This document shows positions 19,695 through 53,107 of a stretch of DNA of 64,000 nucleotides, piece after piece. The notes beneath the pieces are model-generated. The model had not been told where the DNA came from. It saw only the letters and a list, made by a program, of their open reading frames with translations, and made no database searches. Position 1 is the first letter of the stretch; every line of letters starts with the position of its first letter. Origin of the DNA: Adineta vaga (lineage: Eukaryota > Animalia > Rotifera). The DNA is taken from NCBI GenBank assembly GCA_021613535.1, contig CP075492.1, forward strand, positions 15,252,001-15,316,000, written 5' to 3'. A program made the position numbers and the translations under genes.

Positions 19695-20820
19695 CTAGAA
19701 GAAGATATTCATCAATTAGACCGATTAAGTTTCGGAATATCCTATATCTACAATCTCATTGCTACTGCAGTCTCTATTTCTTTTATTGATATCCCAATGA
19801 CAAAGTAGAAGGGTAACCATAATGCTGTTCTTAATGTAGATCATATTCGCTGCACTCTTACATTAGCCATTCGTGTGTTCTATATTACGCACGGTAATAC
19901 ACAATAAACAGGAGCACGAAGAAAAATGAAAGATGAAGAAATGCACGAACGCAACGTACATAATAGGACATCCCCATCGGTGGACCAGCTACGGTGCGAA
20001 AGGGGGGCAAGTACTCTCCTTAAAAATGTTTTACAAGGCAACAAATCTTTATTGTCTCTGACATTGTAAACGTTTTTGAACACTCATGGCTCCATCCGTA
20101 GTATTACACAATCGTATTGACATCTATCATAACCTTTAAATGAATCTTTGAATGACATAAAACTTATAAATAATAGTAAAGCTTATTCCAAGAAAAAGCG
20201 CAAATAACTTCTAGTAAAAACATTCGGATTTAATAAGTGAGGATAATGATGTGACGATTTTTGTGGGAGAGATGTTTGCGCTGTTGGAACTACATCTTCG
20301 TTTATTTCTTCCTGCCAATAATCGCATCGTTCTGATACGGAGCACACGCTTATATACTCGTCCATCAAAGAAAACGAAATAATATAGAAAAAAAATTGAT
20401 TTTTGAGAAAGATTCATTTTCAGTTCGTAATCACCGTTTATATTCAATGGCTTTATCGACATTCGAAAGATACTCATACTCTCTTTATACACCCTTAATA
20501 TGAAAATCTTTAGAATTTTTTCAAATGATTTAGAAATTTTTTGATAAACGCAAGAATTTTGTTGCCAACCTAATATTTACAAAACTTCAATAAATACAGA
20601 CCACTCAAGTCGGACGATTGGGTGTGGAAACGGTTGGTTCCAGCCGGAAAATTACGGTATACTGCTTCGGGAATCATCATCCTGGGCAGAGGTTCTAATA
20701 GAAACTACTGAACCCAACCGAACCGAACAAAGAACCAGAAAAACCCAGTTCTATTCGATTCTGCTACCAATGAAAAAAGAAAAGACGGTAAGTTGGAAAG
20801 TTGGAAGCAGAGTAAAGAAA

Positions 20821-22468
20821 GTGAATAAAAATTTGTCGTTCGTCGTCAGTACCAAATGTATTTCTTAGAATATGATGAATAATCACAAGAAAAAAATATT
20901 AATAGTAAAACGTCTGCTTTGAATACAGTGTTCTCTTTTTTCTGTCTTTGGTGTTTTATGTTCTGTACTGCTTCTTTCTATCGTCCGATAATCACAAAAA
21001 ACAAAATTTCTTTCTTTTTTCTACTTCTCTCAGGTGTTAATAAAGATTTGCTTACGTATATGAGTGTGTGTGTTAGTCTCAAAAAGAATTCTAAATCAGA
21101 TGCATCTTGAAGGTGAAGATGTGAGTGTAGATGGTGGTCTAAGACTGAGCATCTAACGATACAGGCAAGGGTGTGTAAAAGTGTTTTGAGAGCGGTGTGT
21201 GGATGGGCGATTCAAGCAGACTACAACGGGTTCTCACCTGGCTGAACGGTCGTACTAGGTAGTTAAAACTCTGCAACTATATGAAATGATGCAAGTATCG
21301 TAGATCAGCGTGTGAGTGTATCAAAAGCAGAGTGGGACGTATTCTACTCACGAGTCAGAAAAAAGGAATACTGCAGAACCTTTTTGCGGATTCTGCGAGT
21401 GGGTACTATTTAGATTGTTTGCTTGTCCTACCTCTCTTCTGAGAAGAGAACGCATATATATATATATATATCGAGAAAAAATGGAAAAAACCAACATAAC
21501 GATGAACAATAGGAAATTCCCAACTATATATATATATATGAATAATACCACATACATAGAAAGGAAAGGAAGAAGCGAAAGAAAAGAATATGTGTCAGAT
21601 GCCTCGGTCGATGCAGACCCTTTCGTTTATTCCCTGTATCTTCAAACATGTATATGTTTATATAACATTAAACAGAGAAAGAGACTAGAAAGAAATGCAA
21701 TAATATAAATGTATACTGAAATGGTATGTGAGACAAAAAAATAAAAAAACGAGATCACAATGTGAGAAACAAAAATCGAAAAAGAAAAGAGAAACTCAAC
21801 AACAATAAAAAAAGTGAGAAACGAGGAAAATTTTGTAAATATTAATGTTGATTTGATTTTGATGAATGATGTCGATGTTGATGATATTGTGAACGGTAAC
21901 GTGGATAATGATGACGAGCTAGAGATGATGTTCCACTATTTGTTAATTTGTTGTAATGTTGTCTTGTAAAAATATGTCGAGATTAATCTTCATAAATTGA
22001 TAATGATTCCGGTTGACGAACGGCGACGAACCATCTTATCTTGTGTGTTCGTTTCGATACTGTTGTGTTGACGATGTAAACCGGTATTTGATGTTGTTTC
22101 AGGATTAATTTGATTTTTGTAATTGTAAAACGTGAATCAATATCTTCGAAGATCAACTTGTTGCGGTTATATCGTCGACGTTGTTAGACTTTCTGTTTCT
22201 ATTAAAATAAGTGTGCAGTTAATTCTGTTTGATTTTGATTGGTTTGCAGCGATTCCACATTCTTTGCGTATCTAGGTGAACCAAAACTAATGGAATTTCC
22301 TGTTCTGGATGATATATAATCGATTAATCTTGACCTGTTGATGCATAATTATGCTCAAGAATTAAGATAGATTGAGCATTTAATTCATTTATAGAAATAG
22401 TTTCATTCGATGATTTTGTTCGAGATTTCTTCGGTAAAGTTGTTCGTTGTTCAGAGATATTATCGTAA
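20821..22468 (-). mobile_element. Probable decayed Athena/Terminon (Penelope-like) retroelement fragment: disrupted basic/His-rich ORF, 3' non-coding region and hammerhead-like motif
   Basis: Minus strand 22468-21843 reads, with stops and a frameshift, NRNRKSN/RRRYNRNKLIFEDIDSRFTITKIKLILKQHQIP...IFTRQHYNKL...HHYPRYRSQYHQHRHH. This resembles the KR-rich/His-rich accessory ORFs of bdelloid Athena elements (recalled resemblance). CTGACGA lies at 20849-20843 after a TAC..GTA mini-stem. No RT was seen. Confidence 0.4.
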
Positions 22469-23273: not shown

Positions 23274-24829
23274 ATGAATATTATTATTTTTTTATGGGTA
23301 TTTACTTCTATCGTCCTGATGGTTGTTTTCATGGTGTACTGGTTATTAGTGCGACCTGAAAAGCGCTCCTATAATGCATTACATTCTCAAGGTGTGCCTG
23401 GGGAACCATATGTACCTATCATTGGTCAACTGCTCGAAATTAATCGTGCTCGAGTCAAGGATGATACATGATTTATTATGAAGAACTGGCGCGAAAACAT
23501 GGACCTGTTTTTCTGATGGGCTTCGGTCCATTGACACGTCTTGTCGTTCTCGAACCTAATTTGCTCGCCGATATTCTTGGTCGATCATATGCTCACTATT
23601 ATAAGAAAGCAAACTTCACCGCAACTGTGTTCAAATCAATAATCGGCACTCACAATCTTCTTGTAAGTGAAGGAGAAAAACATGAGCGAGCTCGAAAGAT
23701 GCTGAATCCAAGTTTTCATTTTGCCAATCTTCAATCGATGGTGTCTGTCATGATTGATCAGACGAGAAAGATGATCGACGAACTTTTTGTGATGAGCGAC
23801 CATCGATCTGTTGATTTGCAGACAGAATTCAGTGCATTGACATTGGCGATTATCGCTTCGTGTGCCTTTGGCAAAGGCTTTGAAACCATTCACAATGCCA
23901 AAGATATTGTGAAACGGACATTCACTGTCGTGCTGGAAGCGATTGAATATCGGACGATGTGTATGATCAACCAACTTCCTTTCTTAGCAGAAATGCCTTT
24001 CTGGCGCAAGCGAATCGTCGATAAAGGTGCTGAAGAAGTAGCGCGTTTTGTTGAGCAGATTATTGCTGATCGTCGACATGGTCGTTCGCAAAGTTTATGC
24101 TCGGGATGTGATATTCTAGACCTACTTCTATCAGCAGTCGATGCGCATGGTCAACCGTTCACCGATGAAGAAGTTAAAGAAGAAGCTCTTACTTTTGTAC
24201 TAGCCGGCCATGAGACAACCGCAAATCTTTTAGCTTGGGCTTTGTACGTATTAATGACCAACGAGCAAGTGATGCGTGCATGTTGCGATGAAATCGATCA
24301 TGTGCTTCCCGATGGTATTGAGCCCACTTCTGAAAACATCAGTAATCTGCCGGTATGCGAAGCTGTCTTGCAAGAAACTCTGCGTCTCTATCCACCAGCA
24401 CCATTTTTCGCACGAAATTGCATACGTGAACATACTATCGGTAGCGAAGGTGGGTATCGATTGCGTATCCCAGTAAACACGACTATTTTCGTCAATACTT
24501 ATGTTCTCCATCGAAGATCCGAATTCTGGTCTCGACCACTTGAGTTTGATTATACTCGTTGGATGCGGGATCCTATCACTGGTCAAAAACCAAAGTTAGC
24601 TCATCCTTTTTGTTATTTACCATTCGCTGCTGGGCCACGCAATTGCATTGGAAAGAATTTTGCATTGCTTGAAGGCAAAGTTTTATTAGCGATGTTATTG
24701 AAACGATGTCTTTTCGAACTTGAACCAGGGCAAACAGTGACACCTGATATGCGCATTGCCATGCGACCTAAATACGGTTTGCGGGCACGAGTCAGCAAAC
24801 GACAGGCTGCTATGTCTACTGAAGATTAA
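23274..24829 (+). CDS. Cytochrome P450 (intronless, one frameshift at ~23465)
   Basis: N-terminal TM helix and GVPGEP hinge in ORF 23274-23471, continuing in ORF 23468-24829 with AGHETT, ETLR and FAAGPRNCIG. The frame change at GATGATACATGATT cannot be explained by an intron. Confidence 0.9.
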
Positions 24830-26533: not shown

Positions 26534-27904
26534 TTATGTAGTATCACTCGACTTGCCCAAAAGAATTCGCGCCCGAATGGCTGCCGCGGCTCGCCCACCA
26601 GTTAAAAAAGCACCATGAACACATCCATTTGCCGATTCATTGATATCATCGTTGACGTACGTGTGTTCACCGGCCCAATGCAATCGACCATCGTCTGTCT
26701 CTCTAGCCAATAATTCCATAGTGTGCTGATTCGAATGTACTGCAAAGTTTGAATAAGAACCGAACGACAGAGGATCTTGAGACCATCGAGTAAATTTGTA
26801 CTTGATCGGATCTGGTACGACATATTGAGGAAAAATTTGTTGAAGAAACTTCATTACATGTGAAAGTATCTCACTATCCGCGGCATTCTCCAGTTCAGCG
26901 GCGTTAGCACCTGATAGTAGAAGAATGAGTATATTGGCAGGTGGTGGGAGACATACAATATAATGAAAGCGACTTCGAGGTTCATTGCATGTACGCAATA
27001 CAGTTATTGCCATTAAATTCCAGAAACAATCGGAGAATTGTAGAATACATTTATTTAATAAACCAAAACCCATACGACCAATGGCCTCACGTTTCCATTC
27101 AGGCAATGGAGGTTCAAATGCAATAGTCTCTCGTTTTAAACGCCAAGTGGAACAGTTATAAGAACGTATCGACAGAATATCGGTGAATCAACGTCTGCTA
27201 CTTTAACGGCTATTTGATCGGAATTACGAGTATCAATATGTGTCACGAGTGTATTCAGTCGAATGGCTAATTTATATTGATCAACGATGCGTTCGAGAAG
27301 GGTTCCATAACCATATGATACCCATTGATCACACCTAGCACTTTCTTGAGGAGTTCTCCATTCTTTAGCCGAGAGTTCGGCAAGATCTGACGCTTCATAC
27401 ATTTCTATGTCAGCGAGACAACAATCTATAATCGATTTGAGATGCCCATGAGTATCAGCTAGTTGTTCATAATCCGCCTGAATCACATCTTGGATGCTTC
27501 GATCGTTTAGTTCCTCAGTATCAGAAGCAAATTTCTCTAAGCATGTAATAAAGTGCTTATATATCATATCGGCTTGCTGTTCGGAGTCAGGAGACAGTGG
27601 TTTTCCATCATGACTAAGATTGAGCAAATGTTCTTCTTCGTCATTTTCCGAAATAGCCTGTGTCACTGCTTTGAATTGTTGATAATAGGGATACATTGGA
27701 TTATGGAATCCATACTGATGAATCCAACTGGCGCCAAGATCGACAGGAGTTGGTGCGAACGTTTCACTATCCGTATGCTCGGCCACCAGGACGATTCCGT
27801 GCCTCTAGCACGATAAATGACAATGACGTCTTCTGTAACTCAATAGCTGCCGCAATACCTGCTGCACCTGCGCCAACAATGATAACATCGAAGTCGGCAA
27901 TCAT
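26534..27904 (-). CDS. Flavin-containing amine oxidase (polyamine oxidase/MAO/LSD1-like catalytic domain); intronless, two frameshifts
   Basis: ATG at 27904: MIADFDVIIVGAGAAGIAAA...LEARNRPGGRA (GxGxxG and GG motif), then DLGASWIH, ITVPLGV, NKCILQF, TRWSQDPLSFGSYS, WAGEHT and VHGAFLTG. Frame changes at ~27775 and ~27137. Confidence 0.88.
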
Positions 27905-29125: not shown

Positions 29126-32100
29126 TTACAATTTCGTTCGTGAACTTTCTTTGATTAGTTTCTGAACCACTGATGGATCGATAAGCGTTGATGTATCTCC
29201 AATATTAGCAATATCCGGCTCAACAATCTTGCGCAATATTCGTCTCATGATTTTACCGCTCCGTGTTTTAGGTAAGTTAGATGCAAAATGAATAATATCA
29301 GGAATAACATGTGCGCCAATGCTTTCACGGACGACTACCACAAGTTCTTTCTTGAGTTCATCTGTTTCTGGTATATTGTCTTTGAGCGTAACAAAACAAT
29401 ACATACCTTGATTCTTTATAGGATCCTATTTTTCAAAAAGAAAATATAGTATTCATCATTTAGCATTAGAAAGTAGTGTGGGTAGCAGACTTAAGTTGCG
29501 CTCATCTACCCCGTACCTCGGCCCAATCATCTAGTAAACAATTATGATACTGCAACTATTAGAAAGCTTACCGGATATCCTACAACAGCTGCTTCTGAGA
29601 CGGCCCGATGCGATACAAGAGCTGATTCGACTTCTGCCGTGCCAATATTGTGCCCGGAGATTATGAGAACATCGTCCTACATTACATATGTTTTTAGAAA
29701 TTATGACAGTCGAACACTCACCACTCGACCCGTGATCCAATGATATCCATTTTCTTTTATTTCACAACCATCTCCAGTAAAATAAAACCCTGGATACCGT
29801 GTGAAGTAAACATCAACAAAACGTTTATGATCACCAAATATAGTGCGCGCTTGGCCTGGCCACGATTCACGTATGCATAACTCCCCCATACATGGCGGTT
29901 TCAGTGGAGCTTGTGTTTTGGGATCAAAAATCTGTGTTTGAGTGCCGAAAAACGGTAGTGTAATCGAGCCTGGCACCAGTTCTGTGACGTTCGAAATTGG
30001 TGCTATCATGAGGCCACCTGTTTCTGTCTGTAATGAACTCAAGTGAAAGATACTTAAAAAACAAGAACTTACTTGAAACCAAGTATCAACAATAAAGCAT
30101 CGTTTGTCGCCTAGAAAACAAAACAGGTTAATTTATCCGATTGCGGCACATTGTAAAAATCAACTGTAGAACACAAAACGTTTCCTAGCTTTCTCAACAT
30201 CTATATGCCCTCAAGAGTTTTAGACCACGTGATAAATTCTAAAAAAGGATTTTCAGTTGAAAGGTTTATAGAAACAATAGTATCTTATAATAGCTAGGGT
30301 TTATTACCATGAAAACCAGTGAGAAAGATTTTTTGCTTAACGGATAAGATTATCTTAAATATAAATGGCTTACGTTGGATTCCGTAATCTACGATCAAGA
30401 GCTTTCTGATTCACAGTTATGCATCTATCACTGTAAAAAATATCGTTCCAAGGGTCGTTGAAGAAAAGGGTATTTGTAAAAGTTTATTATTCGACGCCCA
30501 TTGTTTACAATAAATATAGAATAACCATGTTAGAAATATATATATATATATATATATGTTTAATGAACGCGGTCAGAGAGATTTCTTGAGGATAAAGTTA
30601 GTTACGTTTCGACTCTTGCTGAGTTTATTTCTTCCTCAAATTTTAAGATCAAGATATTGAGCTGAAAATTTAACCACACCCTTCCTACACCAGCTATAAC
30701 ATTTGTTCCCAGTTTCAGCTCATCTGAGCATACTGCTGGGCTGAGATTCAGTTTTGAGAGAGTGAGTGACCTTTCGCGCACATGACTTCAAATCTCTCAT
30801 AATTTCTGGATCTCATGAGCTATTTTATAGCTTTCCTAGGGTTATTCGAGGATTATTCTTTTAAGTTTCTTAAGCATACATAACGATGGCAGCTCGAATG
30901 TTACTCTAAGCCAGACATGAAGAGATCAGAAGACCTATTGCAATAGCTCCATAAGAGTTATGTGAGCGACTCTGAACAGCCTTCAAAAAAGTAATAAAAA
31001 CTGTCTCTCGATATTTTTTGAAAAGTTTTGAAGACCACCTATATTCATGGGAGCTGAAATGGATGTTCAACTTCAACACACGTAAACAAAGCCGATCATT
31101 AAGTTCGAGTTATGCGAGCTGAACAATAGCTGTCCTATTCTTACTTACCAACGACATTATGATACCAGCGCCATGCTTCTGGATTTATGGGTTCTCCGAT
31201 AGTTCCTAAAAGTCGAAGAGATTTTCGACTTGTGCATGTGACAAAAGAGTCGCTGTGAGCCATGAGTGAGCGGATAACTGTGGGTGCCGTATAGAATATG
31301 TTAACTTTGTGCTTATCGACAATTTGCCAAAAGCGCGATGCATCAGGATAGGAAGGAGTGCCTTCGAAGATAAGACTTGTAGCTCGATTGACTAGCGGTC
31401 CATACACGACATCTATTTTAATCGCACAATTTTATATTTTACCACTAGAATAGATTGAGAAGGAAAAGTTGCTTACATGAATGGCCTGTAATCCAACCAA
31501 TGTCGGCCGTACACATATATACTTCGTCAGGTTTGTAAGAGAAGATATATTTGAATGTAAGACTAACATGCGTTAGGTAGCCGCCAGTCGTGTGAAGAAT
31601 GCCTTTGGGCTTGCCTGTAGAACCACTTGTGTAGAGCTAAAACCAAAAAACAATGAATATTCTTCATTACTTTTTTTTCTGATTACTATGAACATTGAAT
31701 CTTCAGCCTTCATCGGCTCAGGTTGACACATTCATCATCGACTAGATTCATTTCTGCGTACATGCAAAAATCACGTCCATCAATCCATGCCATCGAATCG
31801 GACTGGATAAAGTCATTTAATCCATCGCTCGCGAAATATTTTCGTTGAAAGATAAACACTGTTTGAACAACAGAACACCTTTTATCGTTCAATGCTTCAT
31901 CGACTTTATGCTTCAGCACATGGCATTTACCACCACGAGTGCTAACATCACTAGTAATAACGACTTTTGCCTGCGAATCAACAATTCGTTCAGCTAAGTT
32001 TTTACTACTAAAAGCAGCAAACACAACTGAATGAACAGCGCCAATTCTGGTACAGGCAAGAAGAGCAATAACCACTTCAGCCACCATCGGCATGTAAATA

Positions 32101-32630
32101 ACAACCCGATCACCCTTTCTAACATCATGCTTCTTGAGTACATTAGCAACTTTTTTGACTTGATGCAGTAGTTGACCATACGTTATATTTTTAAACTTTG
32201 CTGTTGGTATGTCAGACTCGAAAATAAGTGCAATTTGTTGTGCTGCAGTCGGATCTCGTTCAATATGTCTGTCCAAGCAATTGTAGCACACATTTAAAAC
32301 GCCATCTTGGAACCATTTGATATCGACACCATGCGATGAACGGTAATCGAATTCGTAATCCTTGATTTTTGTTGGTGGTTGATACCAAGTTAAACGATCT
32401 GCTGCCATTTTCCAAAATCGATCGGGATCTTTAATTGACAAATTATACAGAAGTTGATATTCATCGAACGATGAGATTACATCGGGTAGTTGTACCAAAT
32501 CAGATGAAGATGAGTCAGTTGAAGCGGTAACAACTGGCGAATACTCCACTTCTGTTTTATTAGATGACAAAGGAGTATCTGAAGATATCATTGGAATAAC
32601 ACTAATACTGGCCGCACTTGACAATGACAT
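29126..32630 (-). CDS. acs: Acetyl-CoA synthetase (AMP-forming), about 7 exons, one frameshift at ~31725
   Basis: [84 protein letters not shown] and [16 protein letters not shown] across GT-AG exons; one ~1-kb intron (~30111-31146). Confidence 0.93.
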
Positions 32631-34584: not shown

Positions 34585-36537
34585 ATGGAAAACACGTTAG
34601 GTATAATACTGACTGCTCTTTTCATACTTGGATGTTTTCTACTTCACAAAAGACATCGGCAGCAGCAATATTTCAAGAAACGTGGCATCGCAACGCCGCC
34701 GTTTGATTTATTATTCGGACATTTACTGACGATGTGGTCTGCAAAATCATCTGCTGATCAATTAAAAGAATGGACTCGAAAATACGGGAAAATATATGGA
34801 ATTTTTGCCGGTAGCTCACCTATTTACATTGTATCGGATGTTAATTTTCTCGAACAAGTTTTTATCAAACAATTTTCAAGTTTTTACAGTCATCAAACGG
34901 ATTTTTCTGAGCATGCTGTAGAAAAATCGAAGCGTGGTCTCTTAATTGCTAGTGGAAATCAGTGGCGAAGGCAGAAGCAAATTATTGGACCGATCATATC
35001 TACAGGTATAAAGCAAATGAGCCCACTGTTTGATAAGTGCGTCGATGAAATGATACATTCGCTGGAGTCATTAAATAGCAACATACAAGAAGAGTTTAAT
35101 ATATATCCATTATACAAGAAAACATTCTGGAATATGGCATGTAAGTTCTTTGGATGTGAGAAGGGCTTTTACAATTGACATGTTTCTTATCTTTTAGGTG
35201 GCTCATTTGGTATCGATGTTGTAGTAGAAGAAAATGCGACGAATAAGCTTTTCAATGAATTTGAGAAATTTTTCATGACGGACACTAAAAGTTATCCATT
35301 GCTGAGAGCATCAGAGCTATTCCCTTCCTTTGGAACTATTTTTCTTTACTTGTTCGAGATGTATAACGAAATAGGTCGTTTATTCCGTGATATTATTTGG
35401 CCAAAGGCATGGGGTCCGATTTGGGAAGGGTATGCTCTTTATCGCGTCAAACATCAGCTGTTTTCACTCTTTAACAAGCGCTGGCGGATCCCACATAATG
35501 AACACAATATTCAGGGACAAAAACAAGATTTTCTTACAATGATGAGTGCAACATTAACTTTCGATTCAATCGAAGTAGGATGTTATCTTTAAAACTCCAT
35601 CTATTTCTACCTAAAACAGCATGAAGATCCTCATAGAAGGTGTATATTAATAATCAATCTGCGTCCGCAAGTACAGCAATTACTTAATTAAGGGTGAGAT
35701 GCATCTTGAGGGTGTGGGTGTGGGTCTGAAACTATTGGCAAGTTTGAACTTTTGAAATAAATTCTATTTCTTCATCTTTCACGAACCGAGTTTCACTTCT
35801 TTGCGTATAGGATGAGAACAATGTCGCTGGCGGACAATCACATCAACCACGACCGATTAATGCTCATGAGATTATTGACAACGCATTTCTTTTCATGGGG
35901 GCTCAGTATGCTGGAAACGCGGCAGTAATGGCCTGTTGTTCTTACATACTGGCTACTAATTGTGATATACAGAATAAACTTGTATCTGAAATTAATCAAT
36001 TTGCTTCGTCCGCAGACCAGGACAAGCTCAATGGTGATATTGTCTCACAGATGCCTTATTTAGATATGTTCATACGTGAAATTCTTCGCATGTACCCACT
36101 TTCCACATTAGGCATCGATCGACAATGCATGAGAGACACTATAGTTAACGGCATCCATGTGTCTAAAGGTAATTATGCCACAATTTTAGTTGGAATTTGA
36201 TGTCTTCTTTTTTCTGATAGGTTCTGTAGTTCAAGCCGATGTATATTCAATTCATTATGATCCTGATATATGGGGACCTGAAGATCCGGAGATTTTCTGC
36301 CCAGAACGTCATCTAACCGAAAACCGACATCCTCTTGCTCTCTTATTCTTCGGCGCTGGACCAAGAATGTGTCCAGGCGTTCGATTGGCTCTCATTACTG
36401 CGAAAGTCGTTCTAGTCCGTCTTCTTCAACACTACAATATTGTTGCCTGTGAAAGTCAAGAGAAAACGCTGGGTCTCGAAGAAAAAGTTATTCATCTACC
36501 AACTGAATCATGGGTAAAGTTGGTTCCGAGAAAATAA
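34585..36537 (+). CDS. Cytochrome P450 (CYP3-clan-like) with atypical I-helix; exons 34585-35140, 35198-35574, 35811-36168, 36221-36537
   Basis: All three GT-AG junctions keep the frame. N-terminal TM, WRRQK, EILR, PERH and FGAGPRMCPG heme motif are present. The I-helix reads FLFMGAQYAGNAA. Confidence 0.92.
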
Positions 36538-39979: not shown

Positions 39980-42900
39980 TTATATGTGTTCTTGTGTGGA
40001 AAAGGCGCAGTTGTCATCTGTTTTGGAGTTTAGACGTAACTTGGCTGGTGATCCAATCCAGTTGGTATGCATTGCCAAATAATCATTTGTCATTAAATAT
40101 GTTAAGGGAAATATTTGATTATTCCCTTCTAATTTGCAACCGCGATGAATTAAAACATATGGCATTATAATCGTTCCAGATCCAATTGATATAGGCGATA
40201 AATGAATTTTTCGTTTTTCATATGTATGTGCCTAAGTGATATAGAGGAGAAATGTTACAATATATACTTAAATATCTTGGTCGTTATCCAAAATGATTTA
40301 AACTATCGATGATAGATTTCTATTGTCTCATTGGACTTAATAATAATAACTTTTTTTAATAATCTTGTTAATAAGAGATCGTTAGAAAGTATTTTTAATT
40401 TTCAGATTTGATGAACAACTAAAACAAGCGTCTAAATTTAACAACGTTGAAATAATGTTCAGATTTAAGTATATTTTGCATTTGTCTCCAACAAATAACC
40501 AAAGCGCGCCGCCATGAACATCTCCAATAGTCACTGTGCTTTTTATACCATTCGATTCTAGATTTCGTGCTGAATTTTATTTGAACGAAATGCCGAGGCT
40601 TAGAATCTATTTTTATGTTTGTTATTCATAGTGAGAGAAAAAGCTTTCCTGCGGCAGTAATGTTAAATACGAAATTGAAATACTTGCAGTTTCAAATATT
40701 CAAATTTTCCACTCTCCGCACATCCACAATCAGCTGCTACAACCGTTGCACCCACACTCATGCCCGGACAAAGTCTTAAAACTAGTAACGGATCTCTGAA
40801 GAAACCGGACTTCCGTGCGCCGTCTGTAGTAGGTTGTTGGTGTCACCATGCGTTCCGAGGGAGTGCATATCGCTACCTACAACTTCCTCCATGACGCCTA
40901 CCAGAAGACGGGTACTTCGTATAATGAAAGTCTATCCGTAGAGGAAAGGGGTCGACCGAGAGCGATTCTAAAATTCTTTAGCTTCAAACTTACAATCATG
41001 TATTCTTGTTGGCAAAGTATATGTGAGTTCCACAAATTCTTTTAGCGCAATCCTTGTAGGATTAAAGATTTGATACTCGATAGAACTTGTTATATAAATA
41101 GCTAAGCTCACTAATACAGATATTAATGAATGCTAAACGATAAAATACCCATAACTACCCCACACCCATCTTCAATTTATATTTTTCAGGAACTTCTAAT
41201 TAAAAAATCAATCGGTTGTACATTGCGTCTGTGCTTTCGTACTCTTTCATTTAGGTAGTAACACTTTTATTGCTAATATTCAGAAAATATTGCTGATCTT
41301 GTCTTTGAGACTTGACTGTAATTTCTTCTCAACTATAAGAAGCATCAAATGAATATTTATGATTAAATCATTCTATTCATGGGACAAGATCATTTGGTTT
41401 TGTTATTACTGTATGTAGTCAAGAAAACCAAACAAATATAGAAATCTTTCTTCGATTCGATTCGATCTATTTCTAAAAAGTTATGAATATGTTCATTTTC
41501 GGTCTTTGATTCCACACTCACGTACAACCCTAGCTAGTTTCTGCTTCACTGACTCTCAAATCTGAAAATTTGAAACACGAACAAAAACACTACCTTTTGT
41601 TTCTGTGAAAAAATAATCTCTTAATGATTGGTAATTACACGCGTAGATAAGAAGAACTTACTTGAATACTAGCGGTACAATGAATTCGAACATTATTGTC
41701 GATTACAGTTAATTGTGGATCTGTTATTGTAAAAAAATCGTTAAGAATCACGTTATGACCAATTTTGGCGCCCATGATACGTAGAAGAATTATGAGCCAT
41801 TGCGTACCAGAGAAGAAATAATCAATTACATGTGTATGATATACGTTCATCGAAAATAGCTGGTTATAGCTATATGTATATTCACTATCGTTTTTACATA
41901 TATAACGACATTTTTCATCGTAAATACACACTAAAGCACAGTAGATGATGAAAGATAAGAATAAAAGCCAGTTCAATAATAGATAGTACATAGTATTGTA
42001 GTACGTCAATGATGAAAACCAGAGAAAGCTTACAGAACATAAGATTATGGGAACTATTACTGAAAGCAAATATCGTAATTGCACACGTGCCATAATCTTA
42101 CACACATTCCACCAGTATTTATAAGTTTTTGTTGTTAGCGATGATTGATACTGTGCTGGAGTATGCGTTAGAGATATCAATGGCACATTTGCTGCTGGTA
42201 TACCTAAGTAAAATTGATGGGGATTGTAGGCGTTGTTTACCGTATTTTCTAAAGATGTAATACGCGTTAAGCTACCGACAGTTGTTTGTGCTTTAATTGT
42301 TGCACCTTGATGTATTGTAACCATGTTACCAATGAAAACATTATCAGAAATTTGTATTTTATTGATCCGACACTCTTGCTCATGCGTTATTTCCATTGGT
42401 AATAGTAAATAGTCACAATTAACGGTAGCACCACTATCAATTTGTACAAGGTTACGTGAACCTGGTAAACCAAGGAAACCATCCGGGATAGTGATTCCAA
42501 TCTCTACATTTTCGCCGATCTTAGCACATAAATAATGATGATATTTCTTTGGTAAAATTGAAAAAGAATGAAATAATGAATTTGAAACCAAACTACGAAA
42601 CCATATGTTATGTAAGTATGCAAATGTATTCAATTTATACGTGGTGTCTGCTTTTAAGCTTCCAATTATAATAAAGAAGAGAAAAAGAGCAGCGCACATT
42701 GACACAAATAAGTAAACTATTAAACCAAATACGACGCCAATAGAAGTTTCAAATAAAGTTGATACTTGAGATCCAATATTAATTGACAATATATGTATTA
42801 AGAATATTATAATGATACACAAAAACTGATAAAGTTTGTGTTCAATTTTAAATTGTGTGAACTGGTCACTGCTCATTTTAGTGTTCACAGAGGATGATTC

Positions 42901-45900
42901 TCCATGTATTATATTTTGTCCATCGACAATACTATTTGGTGCAATTAATCCACTGACAGATGACATCGACTTAACTAGAACTTTTTCTTTGATGTCAACA
43001 CCACCGTAAAGTACAGATCTTGCCTCGATTGTACAATTATTATGTATTTTTATTTTATCCAATCGAAATGTTTGCTGTTGATAAAGTATATTGCATAGCA
43101 GCACTTCTTTTCCGATAAATACTGAATCACCCACGTCTATCAAGTCCGGAACAGTAATTGACGTTGTTAACAAATGAGTATTTTGTCCGATATGTGCACC
43201 ACACAGTCTTAAATAGGAATTATAAAATGATGTACCTGTTAATATACTTAAAATGTTCGTGTTTAAGGACCACAACCGTTGTAAAATCCACCAGCGATAA
43301 TACGCCCATGAAAATAATTGATATTCTCCTTGTTGCCTTTGGCTGTCAAAAGAAAATAGTAGCTTTTTGATAACGATATATTGTATCAAATGTACAGATG
43401 GTATTGATACAGACCAGAACGTAATATTTAGAATAAACACAGAGAAAGGATGTAACCGTATCAAACTTAAGATTGGTAATATATATACTGAAATTAGTAA
43501 AAGTACACTCAATGTTTCAATAACTAATGAAGGTTCCAATTTTTGAAACTGTTGTTCGTTCTTAAGAGAGAGAACACTTGCCTCTGTTACTGTTTTCGCT
43601 TTCTCAAACTTTGTATCGACTGCTACTAGCGTTTCCAAAACTCTAGCTAATTGTCGTACACTTGGGTTGGAGAACAACAGTTGAATATTCATGTCTGGAT
43701 AGAGACGTTTACGAATCAATGTTAGTGCTTTCATAGCATGTAATGATGATGCGCCCAGTGCAGAAAATGAGATGTCTACATTGATCTTATTTGCCATATC
43801 GGCAGAAATATCAAATGATTCGATGAATATTTTCAATAGCACTTGTTCGATAGCTGTATTTATCACAACATCACTATGTTTATCATCAAATCCAAGTGTT
43901 TCGTTGATAAGTAAAGATCTGGTAAGTGTTGGTAATTGTTTTCGATCTACTTTTCCATTTTGATTCAGTGGAAATTCCTTCATTAGAATAAAGAATGATG
44001 GTATCATGTAGACTGGTAAATGCTTTTGACAATGTGTTTTGATTTGTTTTTCGATTTCTTTTTTCCGTTTTTCCAAATCATCGTGGATAGTATGGATATA
44101 GGCCACAAGAAAATCTTGTTCCTTCGATTCGTGTGAAACTTTCATAACAAGACAATTGTGAATTGCTGCAATGCAAGGCGAATATGGTGAGCCGCTGGAC
44201 GATAGTTTCATAATGGTATTTTCTATTTCACCTAAATAAAAAGTAATTGGCGATTCATGTTTGGTAGGTGTTCATACGACACTTAGAACCAATTTTGGAA
44301 AAGATTCTAATAGTGTGAAGATGTAATTGAGTTTCAGAAATTGCCAACTACTGGGATTATTAAAGACAGTGGAGTTACTCAGTTGTGATAAGACTAGAGA
44401 ATCTTGAGAGTATGGTTCAAGATATATGTTCTTCATCCACACCCTTCAAAACTAAATCGAATTTTGAAGTACACCTCAGGTTTTCGTAGAAGTGAAAGAT
44501 TTTTGTATAAGAATATGCTTAGATTAAGCAGCTCTTGACAACAGATGGAACGTGAGTGCGAGTGTGACTAAGGGTGAGGATGAATAGGAGAGAGTATCAC
44601 CCACACTCGCAATGATCTTCTGACCTTTTCAAAAAAACCTCGCTAATAATGAATTCAATTATTGCCTTCTTACCTGTTTCTATTCGTTGTCCGCTTAATT
44701 TTACTTGGAAATCTTTTCTTCCTACAAACTCAATTGTACCCCATTTGTTAATTTTAACCAAATCACCACTTCTATAAAATTTCTGTTCATCAACGATACC
44801 AGGTAGTTCTTTCATAACTTCTTCAGTTAAATTTGGACGATTTAAATAACCTTGAAACATTCCTCCAAAACTTCCAATATAAAGTTCTCCAACTTGACCA
44901 ACACTTACAAACTGTAAATAATTGTCCAATATATAACACTGGTAGTTTTTTACAGGAGAACCAATAGGAATCGCTAGTTCATATTTGTTAATATCGTGTC
45001 TATAAATGGTAAGGTTTGTGGTAACAATTGAGCATTCAGCTGGACCATATTGATTAATTATTTTGGAATTTAAAGAGAGATTTTGTAATAAAGAGAAAAT
45101 CAATGATGGTTTTGAGACATCTCCTATCAAATGAAAAACACATACTTGTATTAAATTTCAACTAATCTATATTTTATAAAAAACCAAGATGTCTAAAAAG
45201 TATTCTTTGACAATCCTTTCTTTGAATCTAGCAATGCATCTAGAAGGTTTTGCGTACGTATCAAATCGTTGCAATGACCTCGGTCACATTATTTCGTTTG
45301 TTTAGAGTCGAGAGTTCATCACAATCTATAAAAATGTAGGATCTATCTATCTATCCACTGGGAAGACTAAAACCAACTAGTGCAGTACTGTTATTACATT
45401 TATTTCGCTTTTCCTTTCTACACTCTGTATTGACAGCTTCGAATATTTAGAGTTTAAGAATAAGTAAAAACACATACCACCGGTCAATATTACTCTAATG
45501 GTATCCATTTTGTGGAATAATTGATTCTCTTCTAAATACGAATAGATAAGCTGCATTAGCGATGGGAGCAAGATAACAAATGTAACATTATGTTTGGCAA
45601 TTATGTCAGTAAAATATCTCAGATCTTTATTTCCATTCGGCTTTATCGCCACGACTGTGCAGCCCAAAAGTAATGTACCCGCTATTTCAGACATATGATA
45701 ATCGAAACTACAAGCTGTTGATTGCATTACAAGATCATAGCTGCTATTAGTCTGATCAGCAAGAGTTGATTTGATGTAACAGAGAAAATTTTCATGCGAA
45801 AATGTCGCCTAAAACAACTTGTAAGCAATTACAACCTAAGTAGAATTCAAAACTAATTGGTACGTACGATTTTTGGTGTCCCTGTGGAGCCGGAAGTAAA

Positions 45901-48900
45901 TAAATAATAAGCTATGTTCGAAGTTGAAACTGAATCTTCATGAGTGTATCGAGTTGTTGGTTCGTTAAATCGTTGTCATGACCAAGATGAAAACTGTTTT
46001 CAATATTGATACTTACGAAGTCGTTTTTATGTTGAAATTTCAAACTTGTTAGTGAATGATATATTATCAACTTTGGCTGTACTTCATTAGTCAACAAACT
46101 AATTCGTTCCCAAGGATCATTTGGATTTAATGGACAATAGACAGCACCTGCAGCTAAGATCGATAAAATTCCTACAATCATTTCTATAGATCTGTCAACA
46201 AACAGACAAATTACATCTTTAGGTTTGATATAGCGCTCATGAATTAAATACGATGCTATGTGTTGTACATAATACATTAATTCAGAATATGTTAGCGATT
46301 GTTCATCTAATACAACAGCTAGCTTCTGTGAATATTGACTGGCACGATCAAAAAACTCTTCATGTATTGGTTTTAACGGATGATCTGCGCTGACATCTGC
46401 ATATGTGTCATTAAGTCTCTTTATCATTTGTACTTCTTTTGGTAGTAGAATTGACAGTTCATAAACTGGTTGTTTATCTCGTTGAAAATTTGAATAAGAA
46501 TAAAAAAGCTGTTCTAGAAGAATATGAAATCGATCTGCCATCGTATGAATAGTTTCTTGTTCAAATAAATCTGTGGCACATGTGAACGATACTGTCATTT
46601 GTTTTTGATCCGGAACGTAATCTATCCTTAACAGCAAGTCACACTTTGCCACTATGTTGGTTATATCGGAGGTTATGGGCGTGAACCAGTTCTGCGTTTA
46701 TGCAGGTGGGATACTTCAACTTGAATACAAGTTTGCAACAAGTTGCTTATCAAATCACTTGGCATGGCTTTTTGACTATTCAAATGAATAAGTTGTTGGT
46801 GAGGAAAATGTGTATGTGGTAGTATCTCAAAGCATAGTTGTTGAACATATTTTAACTGTTGCTCCAATGATAGCGAAGGATCCATCTCGAAGTAGTATGG
46901 TATTGTGTTTACGAACATTCCAATTAATGATTGCAACACAAGATTGTAACGATTTGCGCTAAGACTTGTAATACGTATTCTTCGATTATTACTTCCCGTT
47001 AGTTTAAACAGATAGATATAATAAATCGTTAGATACAAGTGAAATAGGGTCGCTTGCTTTTGAGTAGCATAATTTGTTATTTTATCAACAAGTGATGTAT
47101 CTAAACTAAACTGCACTGTAAAACCTTTACCGTTTCGAGATTGGTTTAACTGTTCTTTAAAATCATATGGCAAATCTATTCGATGAAGCATTTCGTCGTC
47201 AAGATACCATCGATCCAATGTTTTTTTCCAATATTCTTTTGCATTATACATATCAATACTACGTTCATACTCTGAATAGTCTATATATTGTAGAGGCAAT
47301 GGAGGTAGACATTGATCACTTTCGTAAGCCAGACACAGGTCATCCAGGAATATCTTTATTGAACTTCCATCAAATGCAATGTGATGAAAGAAAAATACAA
47401 TTTTATCATTAACATTTAGTAGAGTATCAACACATCCTGCCATTTGACTAATGTGACTATCCAAAGTATGACAACGAATAATATGACAATGAAGAAGAAT
47501 CCCTTCTTCCAAAGAAAGTAACGATGCATTGATTTGTTCATTCAGAACAATTTCTCGAAATTCTTCTTCATGTGAAACAAATGTAATGTTGAATGAATAA
47601 AGCAACTGCTTTTCGTTATCTGACGTTGATGTAATGTATTGTTTTAGACAGTCTTCATTACCATCATATTTAATTGATGTTCTCAAAATACTGTGTTTTC
47701 TTACAACCTTACTGACAGCTCGCTGAAGACGATTTAGTGAGATGCCGCTTTTTGAAACTTTTAATAAGAGTAATTCATTGTAAATTGCAGTTTGACCATT
47801 GAATCGAACTTTTGTATCGAACCATATTCTTTCTTGAGCATACGATGCTCTAGCTATAAATATAACGAATAAGAGATAATGATCAGAAATGTCCGAATAG
47901 ATTTATTTCACTGGCGAAGAAGACTAGGTCATATATTATTCAGATTGTGGAAACAGCAAATTCTGTAGGCTTAAATATTTGATATGCTGTAAGAAACGCG
48001 ACATATATATATATATATATATATACCACTTCTTTTTCTGAGGATCAGAATATGTTCCTGACACATATACCTAAGACGTCACCGATGCACTATTGGATTG
48101 CAGTCTCTTCAGCTTCCAGCGTTTCTATTCTTCGCATGTCAGACAATAAAGTTTAGACATAATCACTTAAGGTTACCAGTATCAATCTATAGACTCCTTT
48201 GTTTTTCTCATCGTCAACTTTATGTTACCCATCTAAGAGTCAAAAAATGAGAAAAGAAATTATAATGCAATGCTTAAAAAACTGAACAAGGTTCATAATT
48301 CGAGCCATTTTTTGACAGAAAACGTCTTTGATCAGAAAGAGAACGTATCGAGATAATTTCTTCCTACTTCTAATATGCACTATCAAATTGTCTGGACTTA
48401 TATCGGATACTTCCATTAGTGTCGTCATAAAGAGAATGTTATACGCACATTGACTACAGAAAACTTGTATGGTGACTGTTAATATTGATACAAAAGAACA
48501 ATCATATTAATGTCTTTAGGTAAGCAAGTTAATATACAATATTTTTAGTGTAAAAATGTGCTGAATAGCTTTTGTTTTACGTACTGAATAAGAAAATTAT
48601 TGAATGCTGTATAAACATGAAGTGTGCAATATTTGATTTGCATATATTATCTCATACATAGGCGTTAAACTGCGCGACAGCTATGCATGACGTTCCATAT
48701 TAATAACTATAGGATCCTGTATGGATACGAGGTGATAATTATACTATTTCAAAATAATCTTAATTTATGTTTGTAATAGTTCAAGAATAATTGGTAATAT
48801 TCTTTGTCTCTTTACTACTAGATTCTAATAGTTGTTTGCATAGTTCTTGTCAAATCTGTTTCAATTCTGTAACTCATACTATGTTTTATTGCTATGTCTA

Positions 48901-51900
48901 AAATGGACGAACTCGTATCATACTTCATTTACCTTCGATTAAGTTTAAAGGTTTCCATACTAATTGATAATTTTTAAATTCTGAAATATCGTTGAAGCCA
49001 TCATACTTGCTCGAATAATCGCTTGATGCTTTCGTAGTATTGCTCTCTTGTGATTCATTCGCATCTTCTAGTAGAATGTATGCTCGTAGTTATAGAATCA
49101 GTGTTTCTTGATTGATTTAGTAGATGAGAATAAATATGTTCAGCTACATTTTTGATTGATTTACCTTGCAAGAGTGTGGTTACTGGAATGCGAGTGGAGT
49201 ACTTAAGACACAATGACTGAGCAAGTGACATGGCTGTAAGTGAATCTAACCCTTGTGCCATCAGCGATCTGTCTGTATCAATTACTCCTAATATATTTGA
49301 TAAAGTGAATAATTTCTCTACCATGGAGTGAACATCCTTGGTAATTTTTTCAATATCAATACTTAACATAAGCTGATCATTCGATTTAATGTCATTTCGA
49401 AGCGATATAATAGTCGTAGTTCGGTAATCATACACTTTTCGATTATCAAATGCATAATAAGGCATCTGATTTAGTCGGCAAAGAATCGTTTGATCATTAG
49501 AACTCGCATTCCAAGAGCGAGTGCGCAAGAATTTTGACCAGTTGATGTTTGGTAGACGACATAATGATGAAAGAATTGTTTGTTGTTCATTTTCTTTTCG
49601 TTTAAGAGAGTGTATGATCAATGGCACTGAATCACATTTCAAATAGTCCATACATTCTTGAATAGAGCTAACTAACACGGGGTGTGGTGATATTTCTAAG
49701 AATACATGTGTAGTGTAAAGACGCTCGTGCAAAATAGTTTGTATAGTCTGGCTGAACATTGCGGTATTTCTTAAATTTTTCCACCAATAGCTACAATCGA
49801 AGCATAAATTTTTACATTCGCCAGTTACCGTCGAGTATAATGTAGCATTTGCGCAAACTTTATCGAACCTATCATCTTCATGAATTTTATAATAATCGCC
49901 ATTAATACTGCTTAGAGATGTTAATAAATCTTGATAAATATTAAAGTTATCCATTAAAGGACTATGTAATGCATTTTCGAGTCGTATCCACGTTTTAAAA
50001 ACGCTGGGCTTCGTTTTTGTTAGTAATTGGTGTAGTTGCTCGAGCTCTGTGCTAAAACCACTGTATGTCACTGAAGTAGGACTGTTGATAGCGGCAAATG
50101 AGACACGATGTTCAATTCCTTTGAGAAATGAACGTGCTTCTGTTTCGTTCAAACCCATAACTGCTAGCATGCGCCCGCCTTGACGTGTATTACGGTGCTG
50201 AAGACGTGAATAATGATATATTACTATGCATGCATCTTCCAGTGTTAATCGTCCACCAACGTAGGCTGCTGCTATCTCTCCAACTGAATGTCCGAGAATT
50301 ACTCGCGGATATATACCCCATGATAACCAAAGTGCAGTAAGTGCAACTTGCACAGCGAAGATTGCGGGTTGAGCAATGTTTGTTTCATTAATATGAGATG
50401 ATTTTTCGTTCTGCACATTAATAAGCTCCTCGATCAATGACCATTCAGTTGTTAATTTTTGAAGTTCTTTACTAATTTTATCAATCCATTTCCTAAATAC
50501 AGGTTCGGAATTGTATAGTTCTCGTCCCATTTTCCACCATTGCGGTCCTGTTCCACAATAAACAAAACATATATTTTGATGAACTTGGGATGCATGCGAT
50601 TGTTTGATTTGACAGAATACAGAACCAGGTGTACCATTAATATTGTTCGTATCAACGTGTGATAAGGAGACTGATATTTGGTTTTTGAATTCTTCATTAT
50701 TAGAAAAGATGAATGATGCTCGATGTGAAAAGTTTGTATTTCGTTTGAGTAATAATTTATAGCATAAGCCAGGGAGTATATGGTTTTGATTTTCTAAAAG
50801 CAACGATGAATACCATTTTGAAAAATTATTTAATTGACTAATTAACGATAGTTGACACTTAGCTAACAACAGACAAATTTATTAAAACAATAATAATATC
50901 ATTTAAAAAAAACAGATGGAAACTCACCGGAAATAACTGCAAGATAATATTGTTGCTGTTCCAATGTACTTGAATTATTTGCTTCTAAGCATTTAGATGA
51001 TATTTCCTTCTCTGAATGAGATTGAGAAAAACTGCCCCATTCCTCAATAATTGCATGAGAATTTTTGCCATTAATTCCAATTAGGGCCAACCGATTTTGT
51101 GGAAACATTGTTCGTTGATGTGCAATCTGTACGTTATATTTTTCAGATTTAGTTATCATATTATCATGTCCATAATTTCTTTGTGGTAGGATTATACGAT
51201 TTTTCATCGATAATGCAACATTAATTAAAGCTGCAGTACCCGCTGCACTACCAATATCGCCTATATTAGACTTGATTGTACCGAGCAAAAGAGGCACACT
51301 GGTTTCATTATGATGAAAAAATTCACCGATTGCATTGTTTTTGATAAGCTCATTATGTATTGTCCCACCATCAAGTTCTTCAATATAAAATATTTCAGAT
51401 AAGTCAATTTGATTTCTTGTAATATAAATTTCAGTCAATAGCTGCAGTTGAGCACTGTGGGATGCCATTGGAAAATCTTTCATAACTATGTCATTATCAC
51501 AGTGAAAAACTACATCACGAATAACACAATAAATTTGATCACAATCACGAATAGCATCCGATAATCGTTTTAACAGAATAAGTGCAACACCTTCACCTTT
51601 AATGAAAAGATAAGAATGGCAGAATACTTTCAATTTTCGTGGACTATAAGGATATAAACTATGCTTTATCTTACTTCACTTTGACAAAGTAGACTAAATT
51701 AGAAGTGTAAAGTCTTGTGCGGACTTTTTGTTTTGATTCGTACTTTAGAAATGCACCGCAAAATCTCAGGATTCTTTTATCGTCCACTAACAGAGTTCGA
51801 ATACTATATGTATGCATCTGTATGAAATAAGTAATTCAGAGCACTATAAAAAAAGACAAATCCAACATTGCATAAAGACGATGGAAAAAGCCATTTCTAT

Positions 51901-53107
51901 GCGACTAATTTAATATTGACTAAGACCTATGCCCTGTATTGGATTCCGAAACTCGTCTTCGACCCTGGTGGAATCGAAATCTAAGTATGCAAACAACTTT
52001 TTTTTTGAGTTCCAGTCGGAGGCGAGAATACTTTTTGCAATCTAACACAAAGTAACATAACTGAAGTAAGAAAATTTGTTTTTACTCTGGGACAATATCA
52101 ATATTATTTCTTGCATATGAACTGACTCTAAAATACTTGCACTAATGTCAGCTCGAGTTCTAGATCGTACTCCAAAGCTTATTATGATGGAATCGGAGCC
52201 GAAGTTAAACAATTTTTTTCGAGTTTTGAGTCGAAATAGAAACAAATTTTTCTTATCTAACCTAAAAAAAGTCTAATTATCGTCGTAAGATGAAATAATG
52301 GCTCACTAACTTAGCTTAGGAGCTCACTATTTGCGAATATCCTAATACAGTGGACTAGTATTGTAAAAAGAGCATTCCTAAAAAGAATATATTTATGTAC
52401 TTGCCTTTGGTGTACCCGTTTCGTCCCTCTGACGGTACCGGTTGAAGCTGCTTATCACATAACAATTGTTCATTTGTTTGCAGTACATTTGTACCACCAA
52501 TCACAGCATAATCAGCTTCACCAGTTCTAAGTGCTTGCACAGCCATAGAAAGTGACACCAAACTGGACGGATGCGTCGTATCAAGTGTCAAATTTGGTCC
52601 ACGTAGATTGAAATGATATGCTAAACGTATTGACGCACTGCAGTTATGCAGGTTTGATACCAAAGGAGCTGTGTCAGAATCAAATCCTTTTTCTGCAATT
52701 ATCAATGGACGTTTATCCGAAGTTTGTTCAATAAATACAGCGGTTTTTGTCCCATTAATTTGGTTAATCGTATAATTTGAATCCTCTAGCAAGTGAACAA
52801 ATTTTTCAAGTAAAATACGATCTGATGGATCTATTATTTGCGCTTCTTGATCGGAAATGCCAAAAAAATCTCGATCAAATTCATCCAATAGTTCTTTCTT
52901 CAAAAAATAACGATGTTGGGTCGATTCTTCACTCGAATTCAGACCAGTACTCAGCAACGGCACAGACTCTAATGACGAATCTGTTTGCTCTGTTTCCACT
53001 TCGCTTCCATGGTGAGCATTGGTTGCCATGAAACTCCATAATGCGTGTGGTGAATGAATGTCATTAGAAAATTCACACGAAATACCGATTAGAGCGATCC
53101 GATCCAT
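39980..53107 (-). CDS. Hybrid PKS-NRPS: KS(inactive)-AT-ACP-C-A-PCP-Pls/PosA-type transmembrane terminal domain
   Basis: Exons 53107-52405, 51596-50928, 50862-48933, 47853-45868, 45808-45478, 45123-44674, 44231-41662, 40231-39980. Motifs: KS IALIGISC, RGPNLTLDT, GEGVALILLKRL, KSNIG; AT GHSVG; ACP GLDSL; C ASYAQERIW and HHIAFDG; A FTSGSTGTPK, SFD, NQYGPAE, YRSGDL, GRKDFQVKLSGQRIETGEIE, NGKVDR; PCP LGASSL; three TM + GA(K/H)IG beta-helix repeats ending WIGSPAK. Three frameshifts (~49070, ~46690, ~45930). Confidence 0.9.

Follow-up and report, generated by a model that had tools for sequence, protein, structure and literature searches.

How does an enzymatic assembly line with no thioesterase let go of its product? 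The question is raised by a gene of the bdelloid rotifer Adineta vaga, which lies on the minus strand of a 64,000-nucleotide stretch of DNA (the window; Chrom_3 15252001–15316000 of the Av20 assembly, which comprises six chromosomes and 100.8 Mb). In window coordinates, used throughout, the gene extends from an ATG at 53107 to a TAA stop at 39982–39980 (Chrom_3 15291980–15305107). Its eight exons encode, in this order, the ketosynthase (KS), acyltransferase (AT) and acyl carrier protein (ACP) domains of a polyketide synthase (PKS), the condensation (C), adenylation (A) and peptidyl carrier protein (PCP) domains of a nonribosomal peptide synthetase (NRPS), and a C-terminal membrane domain of the TIGR02353 type (the tail). 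No Pfam or NCBIfam match to a thioesterase (TE), a reductase or a terminal condensation (C_T) release domain was found in any exon or open stretch between 39757 and 53113. An earlier note on this DNA had described an eight-exon gene fusing KS-AT-ACP and C-A-PCP to a membrane tail, lacking TE and reductase, and the exon model and profile matches confirm that description. We propose that this is probably one expressed gene of horizontal, bacterial-type ancestry that encodes a minimal hybrid megasynthase, in which the tail would serve as a chain-release and transfer domain, not as a polymerase.

Domains were called by profile searches (Pfam, NCBIfam), exon by exon or on stop-to-stop open stretches of the minus strand from 53113 to 39983. 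Exon 1 (53107–52405) contains the N-terminal half of the KS (PF00109, E 1e-36) and exon 2 (51596–50928) its C-terminal half (PF02801, E 5.6e-14), separated by intron 1 (52404–51597, 808 nt). A short intron 2 (50927–50863, 65 nt, GT-AG) precedes exon 3 (50862–48933), which encodes the AT (PF00698, E 1.5e-54), the ACP (PF00550, E 1.2e-8) and a linker ending in VWKPLNLIE. The PKS half is joined to the NRPS half across intron 3 (48932–47854, 1079 nt, GT-AG, phase 1). Exon 4 (47853–45868) comprises the C domain (PF00668, E 1.1e-42) and the N-terminal part of the A domain (PF00501) up to the A3 core; exon 5 (45808–45478) the A-domain core including A4; and exon 6 (45123–44674) the region from A5 to A8. 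The predicted introns between them are intron 4 (45867–45809, 59 nt) and intron 5 (45477–45124, 354 nt), and exon 6 is followed by the predicted intron 6 (44673–44232, 442 nt). The first part of exon 7 (44231–43558) carries the C-terminal subdomain of the A domain (PF13193) and the PCP (PF00550), and its second part (43557–41662) the first two repeats of the Pls/PosA-type tail and the start of the third. Beyond the predicted intron 7 (41661–40232, 1430 nt, GT-AG, phase 0), exon 8 (40231–39983, then TAA to 39980) supplies the last 83 residues, which form the end of the third β-helix.

An intact version of the gene is certainly transcribed. Transcript evidence comes from contigs assembled from three RNA-like sequencing runs of 2024 (X1–X3), with one depth figure per contig. 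In these contigs introns 1–3 have zero depth and are replaced by spliced joints, at 51595/52404 and 50862/50928 in X1–X3 and at 47853/48933 in X2 and X3. Within the ambiguity of the first joint, the only legal register (+1) gives a GC-AG intron (GCAAGT..TTAAAG) and restores the KS motif GYTKG/EGVALILLK. The third joint bridges the ACP-linker exon and the C exon (X2 record 10 and X3 record 15). The single spliced transcript anticipated by the earlier note is therefore seen in RNA for introns 1–3, including the ACP-to-C connection; introns 4–7 are predictions that rest on GT-AG sites, phase and the continuity of motifs (PKI/ATFSHE, ILTGG/DVS..NQYGPAE, RIETG/EIE and ASIQ/AHTYE, respectively). Intron 7 falls at positions 631–633 of the TIGR02353 profile and recurs at that place in most A. 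vaga paralogues, and one paralogue (P0021) aligns across exon 8. Introns 3 and 7 are single copy in the A. vaga genome, and the long introns gave no Rfam match. Within the otherwise A+T-rich intron 7, about 290 nt (40700–40990) are richer in G+C, with no Rfam match and no second copy in the genome.

The PKS part contains no ketoreductase (KR), dehydratase (DH) or enoylreductase (ER), and its KS is altered at all three catalytic residues. The active-site cysteine is a histidine, according to the alignment with paralogues and bacterial KS domains (DTACSS replaced by DTTHPSS, 52582–52562), the first catalytic histidine is a leucine (EAHGTGT replaced by EELDGGT, 51381–51361) and the second is an aspartate (NIGH replaced by NIGD, in KSNIGD, 51273–51256). 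The Cys-to-His and His-to-Asp replacements are old, because both are common to an orthologous locus (L015, described below) and His-to-Asp is also found in Adineta ricciae. Judged by these motifs the KS is inactive, and the PKS part is predicted to be a loading AT-ACP with a vestigial KS. Of the PKS module initially proposed, the three domains are thus present, but the loss of the KS residues leaves a loading AT-ACP only. The AT retains its Ser-His dyad (GHSVGE, 50293–50276; NALHS, 49975–49961), and the ACP its carrier serine (GLDSL, 49252–49238). The arginine of the AT motif HRSRLQ is replaced by tyrosine (HYSRLQ, 50215–50198), as it is in all three orthologues. We take this arginine to be the equivalent of FabD Arg117, which binds the malonyl carboxylate, and its replacement makes malonyl specificity of the AT doubtful.

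The C-A-PCP module has the motifs of a working one. The C domain motif is intact (HHIAFDG, 47386–47366). The AMP-binding match of the A domain is divided into four pieces, in which the A3 core (FTSGSTGTPK, 45900–45871), the A4 motif with its aspartate (FDYHMSE, 45706–45686), the A5 motif (NQYGPAE, 45055–45035) and the A10 motif with its lysine (NGKVDR, 43959–43942) are all found, and the carrier serine of the PCP is present (LGASSL, 43758–43741). Anchored on these motifs, the substrate pocket reads approximately D-Y-S-I-L-G-Q-I-V-K, with no acidic residue in the inferred positions after the first. The positions were assigned tentatively by GrsA numbering; the numbering used reproduces the published GrsA code. 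Positions 1–3 (D, Y, S) can be read straight off FDYHMSE, and both A. ricciae and L015 have the same three residues. Position 3 of the Stachelhaus code is therefore Ser and not Glu. A glutamate at this position (Glu221 of PosA) binds the side-chain amine of the substrate, is conserved in all cationic homopoly-amino acid (CHPA) synthetases and is essential in PosA (PMC10522769).

The tail had been estimated at about 640 residues; with exon 8 included it is about 715 residues long, 632 of them in exon 7 (exon residues 225–856) and 83 in exon 8. Hydropathy delineates three transmembrane (TM) hairpins, which amount to six TM helices, at 43515–43384, 42825–42664 and 42069–41923 (exon-7 residues 239–282, 469–522 and 721–769). 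Each hairpin is followed by some 170–200 residues with the hexapeptide repeats of a left-handed β-helix. The match to a Pls-type domain that the earlier note expected was obtained with TIGR02353 (NCBIfam, “Pls/PosA family NRPS”), at E 7.5e-39 and 133.6 bits over profile positions 68–633 of 695 in exon 7, though below the curated cutoff; the remainder of the profile (633–695) is matched by exon 8, 1.4 kb downstream (E 2.8e-6, 26 bits). An AlphaFold2 model of the exon-7 part, computed from an alignment of 18 tails (pLDDT 64.6, pTM 0.70), contains three helical hairpins, after each of which come short helices and β-helix strands, and the same layout is given for PosA's own model (PMC10522769). 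Single-sequence, profile and Foldseek searches of the PDB returned no solved structure of a Pls-type domain; only generic β-helix acyltransferases matched, and the profile matches include the acyl-ACP-dependent enzymes LpxA and LpxD.

This type of tail is not peculiar to one gene. The A. vaga genome contains about 14 loci with divergent TIGR02353-type tails, the present one included, which score between 60 and 134 bits. At least 13 other NRPS loci share this divergent tail at their end, in most cases at the 3′ terminus of a long series of C domains that starts with a PKS on the same strand. The table of Nowell et al. 2024 confirms this PKS-first, tail-last pattern for regions 3.1, 3.2 and 3.8, and further clusters are also marked “NRPS_term” there. 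Only 8 thioesterase matches were found in the whole genome. Two loci on chromosome 1, C1:11882475–11884550 (+, 513 bits) and C1:880858–882927 (−, 508 bits), exceed the TIGR02353 cutoff; by their scores they would be canonical Pls/PosA-type terminal domains, distinct from the roughly 14 divergent ones.

A search for protein homologues among 1.84 billion representatives gave 26 top matches with E-values up to 3e-38 and identities of 31–58%. Every bdelloid source looked up is among them (A. vaga, A. ricciae, Adineta steineri and several Rotaria), and several of the others are metagenome records of ENA or JGI. Most of the remaining matches are 23–30% identical and about 1300 residues long, and the ones scanned have the order A-PCP-tail. 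On this layout alone they are taken as putative bacterial-type Pls/PosA proteins, the few sources looked up being metagenome or sequencing-run assemblies. Other fusions of the tail occur in public data. P0077, from a sequencing-run assembly, reads KS-AT-ACP-tail, and P0131, from a Phalansterium transcriptome, C-A-PCP-tail; among P0042, P0110, P0094 and P0079 the tail is followed by a 4′-phosphopantetheinyl transferase, a reductase, a flavin mononucleotide (FMN) dehydrogenase or an HGSNAT-type acetyltransferase, and P0286 (A. steineri) combines methyltransferase domains with the tail.

Orthologues are found in two further bdelloid assemblies. In A. ricciae the orthologous exons are 58–72% identical. 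That locus is not usable as proof of the fusion, as its halves lie on two contigs and the exon of the A8 region is missing, next to an N gap, and L015 was used instead. A. ricciae does keep the donor, which follows VWKPLNL(S/I)E, and the acceptor, which precedes (G/A)RAS(F/Y)AQERIW, at the same position and in phase 1, and its protein P0164 is continuous from the ACP through the linker to this donor. The KS N-terminal exon was not found on the contig of the PKS half (CAJNOJ010000789.1, L012). Transposons flank that PKS half: a Helitron-like N-terminal/DUF6570 model (1078–4523) extends into the exon for the C-terminal half of the KS, and 5 kb past the ACP exon there is a Transposase_21/DUF1258 gene (11323–14666). 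At L015 (GCA_905250005.1, labelled Rotaria sordida), the KS (56% identity), AT-ACP (76%), C (81%) and A (75–77%) follow one another in order on one contig and one strand; the part of the domain order from KS to A, which the earlier note proposed to seek in other rotifer genomes, is thus found there. In AT, C and A, L015 resembles A. vaga more (75–81% identity) than the A. ricciae orthologue does (61–63%), which is odd for a Rotaria, and the sample may be mislabelled or mixed.

Between orthologues, the ratio of nonsynonymous to synonymous substitution rates (dN/dS) is 0.16 for C and A, 0.21–0.23 for AT-ACP, 0.26 for the tail and 0.33–0.50 for the KS. Purifying selection acts on the working domains; on the dead KS the constraint is relaxed, yet not absent. 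As to how the gene arose, its C domain is 38–41% identical to internal elongation C domains and 30–34% to those next to the PKS in the giant clusters, and its closest AT (52%) is at C6:1595283, with ACP and TE matches a few kilobases downstream. These affinities suggest that a small PKS was joined to a terminal NRPS module.

The window sequence itself is not intact. All junctions had been thought to be in phase in it, a view that fails at three frame-breaking deletions. Two nucleotides are missing at 49072/3, which creates a TGA at 49057–49055, 25 codons past the ACP; one is missing at 46694/5, inside the C domain, and one near 45930, just ahead of the A3 core. The extra bases of the first two sites (+AG and +A) are present in every covering contig, from the RNA runs X1–X3 and from a DNA run of 2013 (X6). 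The frame is open through all three sites in the orthologues (P0164 and L011 of A. ricciae, and L015), where the stretch C-A1 is continuous in L011 and L015, the open frames found being 694 and 683 residues long. The exon lengths total 8888 nt, and the four missing nucleotides bring them to 8892, or 3 × 2964, hence a protein of about 2964 residues. Neither of the frame changes near 46690 and 45930 can be read as an intron, since the open stretches overlap, the reads add one base at 46694 and the orthologues are continuous. The GTAAAT at 49164, chosen as a donor in the GenBank model, would bypass the stop; it was rejected, as its use would remove helix 4 of the ACP, which PF00550 matches to its end and which A. 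ricciae keeps.

The window copy could on this evidence be a decaying allele or a pseudogene, truncated after the ACP by the three frameshifts, with the dead KS as part of the decay. The GenBank model skips large parts of the gene, region3.6 of Nowell et al. 2024, which is this locus, is given with “1 stop codon”, and the KS motifs vary among orthologues, all of which agree with decay. We nevertheless regard it as unlikely. The frame is restored in every contig over the two testable sites, and letters of the window type at single-nucleotide polymorphisms (SNPs) occur in the RNA contigs too, so that both haplotypes are probably transcribed. The orthologues are open, with dN/dS of 0.16–0.26, and the KS changes are old, its own dN/dS being below 1. 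Other Av20 clusters are likewise annotated with frameshifts (Nowell et al. 2024 supplement), which fits with consensus errors of a long-read assembly.

With the expressed, intact gene as the preferred reading, the activity of the tail has to be considered. The earlier note had proposed that it polymerizes the PCP-bound amino acid as in Pls and PosA, and that AT-ACP-C caps or primes the chain, to give an acyl-primed polyamide or a lipo-oligopeptide. The TIGR02353 match does extend over the whole domain, the six-TM, three-repeat topology is the same, and the characterized members of the family named in the literature are polymerases (PMC10522769). Several observations make such a product quite unlikely. 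The serine at Stachelhaus position 3 is kept in A. ricciae and L015 and the inferred pocket shows no acidic residue, whereas the CHPA synthetases keep their glutamate; a neutral amino acid, once N-acylated by the C domain, would offer no free amine for a further round. Tails of this subfamily also stand at the end of giant multimodular NRPS loci with estimated proteins of up to about 16,000–21,000 residues, in which homopolymerization makes little sense. Moreover, the tail scores far below the TIGR02353 cutoff, in contrast to the two A. vaga loci above 500 bits. The proposal of an acyl-primed polyamide is not supported by this comparison, on account of the serine and of the giant loci.

Two genes acting in trans, a KS-AT-ACP ending at the TGA 49057–49055 and a separate C-A-PCP-tail NRPS, would agree with the window stop 25 codons past the ACP and with the location of the halves on different A. 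ricciae contigs, but are extremely improbable, because a spliced joint ties the post-ACP linker to the C exon, this exon has no in-frame start before 47686 while its C domain starts at 47853, the stop is absent from the reads, A. ricciae keeps the phase-1 donor and acceptor, and at L015 a single contig holds the two halves.

If the tail is a release domain in a single protein, a short sequence of reactions can be proposed. The AT would move a non-malonyl acyl group, probably monocarboxylic, from coenzyme A (CoA) to the ACP, with no chain extension. The C domain would then pass this acyl group to the α-amine of a PCP-bound neutral amino acid. Finally, the membrane-embedded, pseudo-trimeric β-helix domain would move the N-acyl-aminoacyl group from the PCP to an acceptor at the membrane that has a free amine or hydroxyl. 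What is released, and perhaps exported, would be a small molecule, the amide or ester of an N-acyl amino acid, and the tail would replace the thioesterase as the chain terminator in this family of bdelloid NRPSs. In Pls, a free amine takes over the monomer from the carrier, which is in effect a release by aminolysis at each step, and β-helix enzymes such as LpxD take acyl carrier proteins as donors. A release role would therefore need no new chemistry.

Several points weigh against this proposal. Read evidence covers introns 1–3, introns 4–7 and the last exon being predicted, and the window haplotype carries its three frameshifts, with assembly errors and a broken allele alike compatible with the contig data. 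The PKS and NRPS halves of A. ricciae are on different contigs. We infer every one of the chemical steps; the A-domain code depends on motif anchoring to GrsA numbering; and a dead KS together with an altered AT could make the PKS part a mere scaffold. Lastly, at 134 + 26 bits against a curated TIGR02353 cutoff of 423.1, the tail is a divergent relative of the domain by which it is named.

A broader proposal, which we advance tentatively and regard as nearly evenly poised, is that the divergent Pls/PosA-like membrane domain is a general termination and export device of a clade of animal NRPS and PKS-NRPS lines, an off-loading mode beside the TE, the reductase and the terminal C domain, by which chains of full length would be passed to a membrane acceptor. 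If so, this single-module gene would be its simplest and experimentally most tractable representative: with one module, about 3000 residues and conserved orthologues, it is the most practical member of the family to express and assay. No other animals are known to have as large a set of horizontally acquired NRPS and PKS genes as bdelloid rotifers. If the tail is the release domain of the family, its chemistry would extend from homopolymer synthesis to assembly-line termination, and the prediction of bdelloid NRPS/PKS products would change; the cyclic peptide that has been predicted in print for one of the clusters may presuppose another mode of release.

Downstream of the synthetase there are two genes for cytochromes P450, at 23468–24829 (+; PF00067, E 9.8e-84) and 34585–35178 (+; E 1.6e-16), which may encode tailoring enzymes. 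Their orthologues (78% and 73% identity) adjoin the A. ricciae NRPS at 20040–21386 and 15621–16142 of L011. Between the two P450 genes of the window are a flavin amine oxidase (26534–27786, −) and an acetyl-CoA-synthetase-like gene (ACAS_N and AMP-binding domains; 31710–32630, −). A conserved cluster including these acyl-CoA-synthetase-like and amine-oxidase genes was rejected, as neither was matched at L011, where only the two P450 genes are syntenic.

The locus has been modeled before. Its GenBank entry (UJR11638.1/I4U23_015819, 1681 residues, “hypothetical protein”), aligned to 40666–53107, is a patchwork in which most of C, A and tail is skipped, which avoids the frame breaks; it contains a false intron (49166–49077), and its end falls inside intron 7. 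The Supplementary Data of Nowell et al. 2024 give a manual coding sequence (Chrom_3 15293635..15305107, window 41635–53107) of 2820 residues as region3.6, “PksD; NRPS_term”, with the C domain not detected and the last exon absent. The analysis presented here corrects both models. The architecture had been called undescribed, which this listing contradicts, while the appearance of the locus among the Av20 clusters inventoried by Nowell et al. 2024 and its bdelloid orthologues uphold the statement that bdelloids carry horizontally acquired NRPS/PKS genes. Bdelloid NRPS and PKS-NRPS hybrids have already been published (PMC11258130, PMC10531068), some of the genes are responsive to attack by fungi (PMC11258130), and a Pls/PosA-like NRPS has been described as a separate gene in a bacterial cluster in a 2026 paper (PMC13291983). 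The terminal domain is not discussed in the main text of Nowell et al. 2024 nor in PMC11258130 or PMC10531068; no paper was found under the term “TIGR02353” in the searchable literature, and no discussion of chain release from bdelloid NRPS/PKS enzymes in the literature searched. New here are the read-supported exon structure, the last exon, the C domain, the three indels, the inactive KS, the altered AT, the glutamate missing from the predicted A pocket and the genome-wide pattern of tails, which argues for release.

The enzyme may finally be compared with known systems. Pls, the ε-poly-L-lysine synthetase of Streptomyces albulus, and PosA, the δ-poly-L-ornithine synthetase of Acinetobacter baumannii, share with it a C-terminal domain of about 700 residues, in which six TM helices form three pairs and there are three left-handed β-helix segments, placed directly after A-PCP and with no TE. 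Unlike these three-domain A-PCP-tail enzymes, the present gene encodes KS-AT-ACP and a canonical C domain ahead of the A domain on one transcript, its A pocket is without the conserved glutamate, its tail reaches 134 + 26 bits against a cutoff of 423, and its host is an animal, in which it has introns.

The giant PKS-NRPS clusters of A. vaga (regions 3.1, 3.2 and 3.8) are closer relatives, with the PKS first, NRPS modules following and “NRPS_term” last, a horizontal origin, the same tail subfamily (32–36% identity) and a shared intron near profile positions 631–633. In contrast to them, the present gene has one NRPS module, and its PKS has a dead KS and no KR, DH or ER. Its PKS part resembles the loading AT-ACP didomains and the KSQ/KS0 domains of modular type I PKSs, where an AT without the carboxylate-binding arginine precedes the ACP and the KS is unable to condense. 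Here, however, the KS also lacks both histidines and would not be a decarboxylase either, and the recipient of the acyl group would be the C domain of an NRPS instead of a KS. As for the tail, LpxA, LpxD and the O- and N-acetyltransferases of sugars and amino acids are its best PDB profile matches; they have the same fold and the same logic, in which an acyl group held as a thioester moves to an amine or hydroxyl where the subunits of a trimer meet. These enzymes are soluble homotrimers, whereas the tail has its three β-helices in one chain, anchored by six TM helices and fused to the carrier protein.

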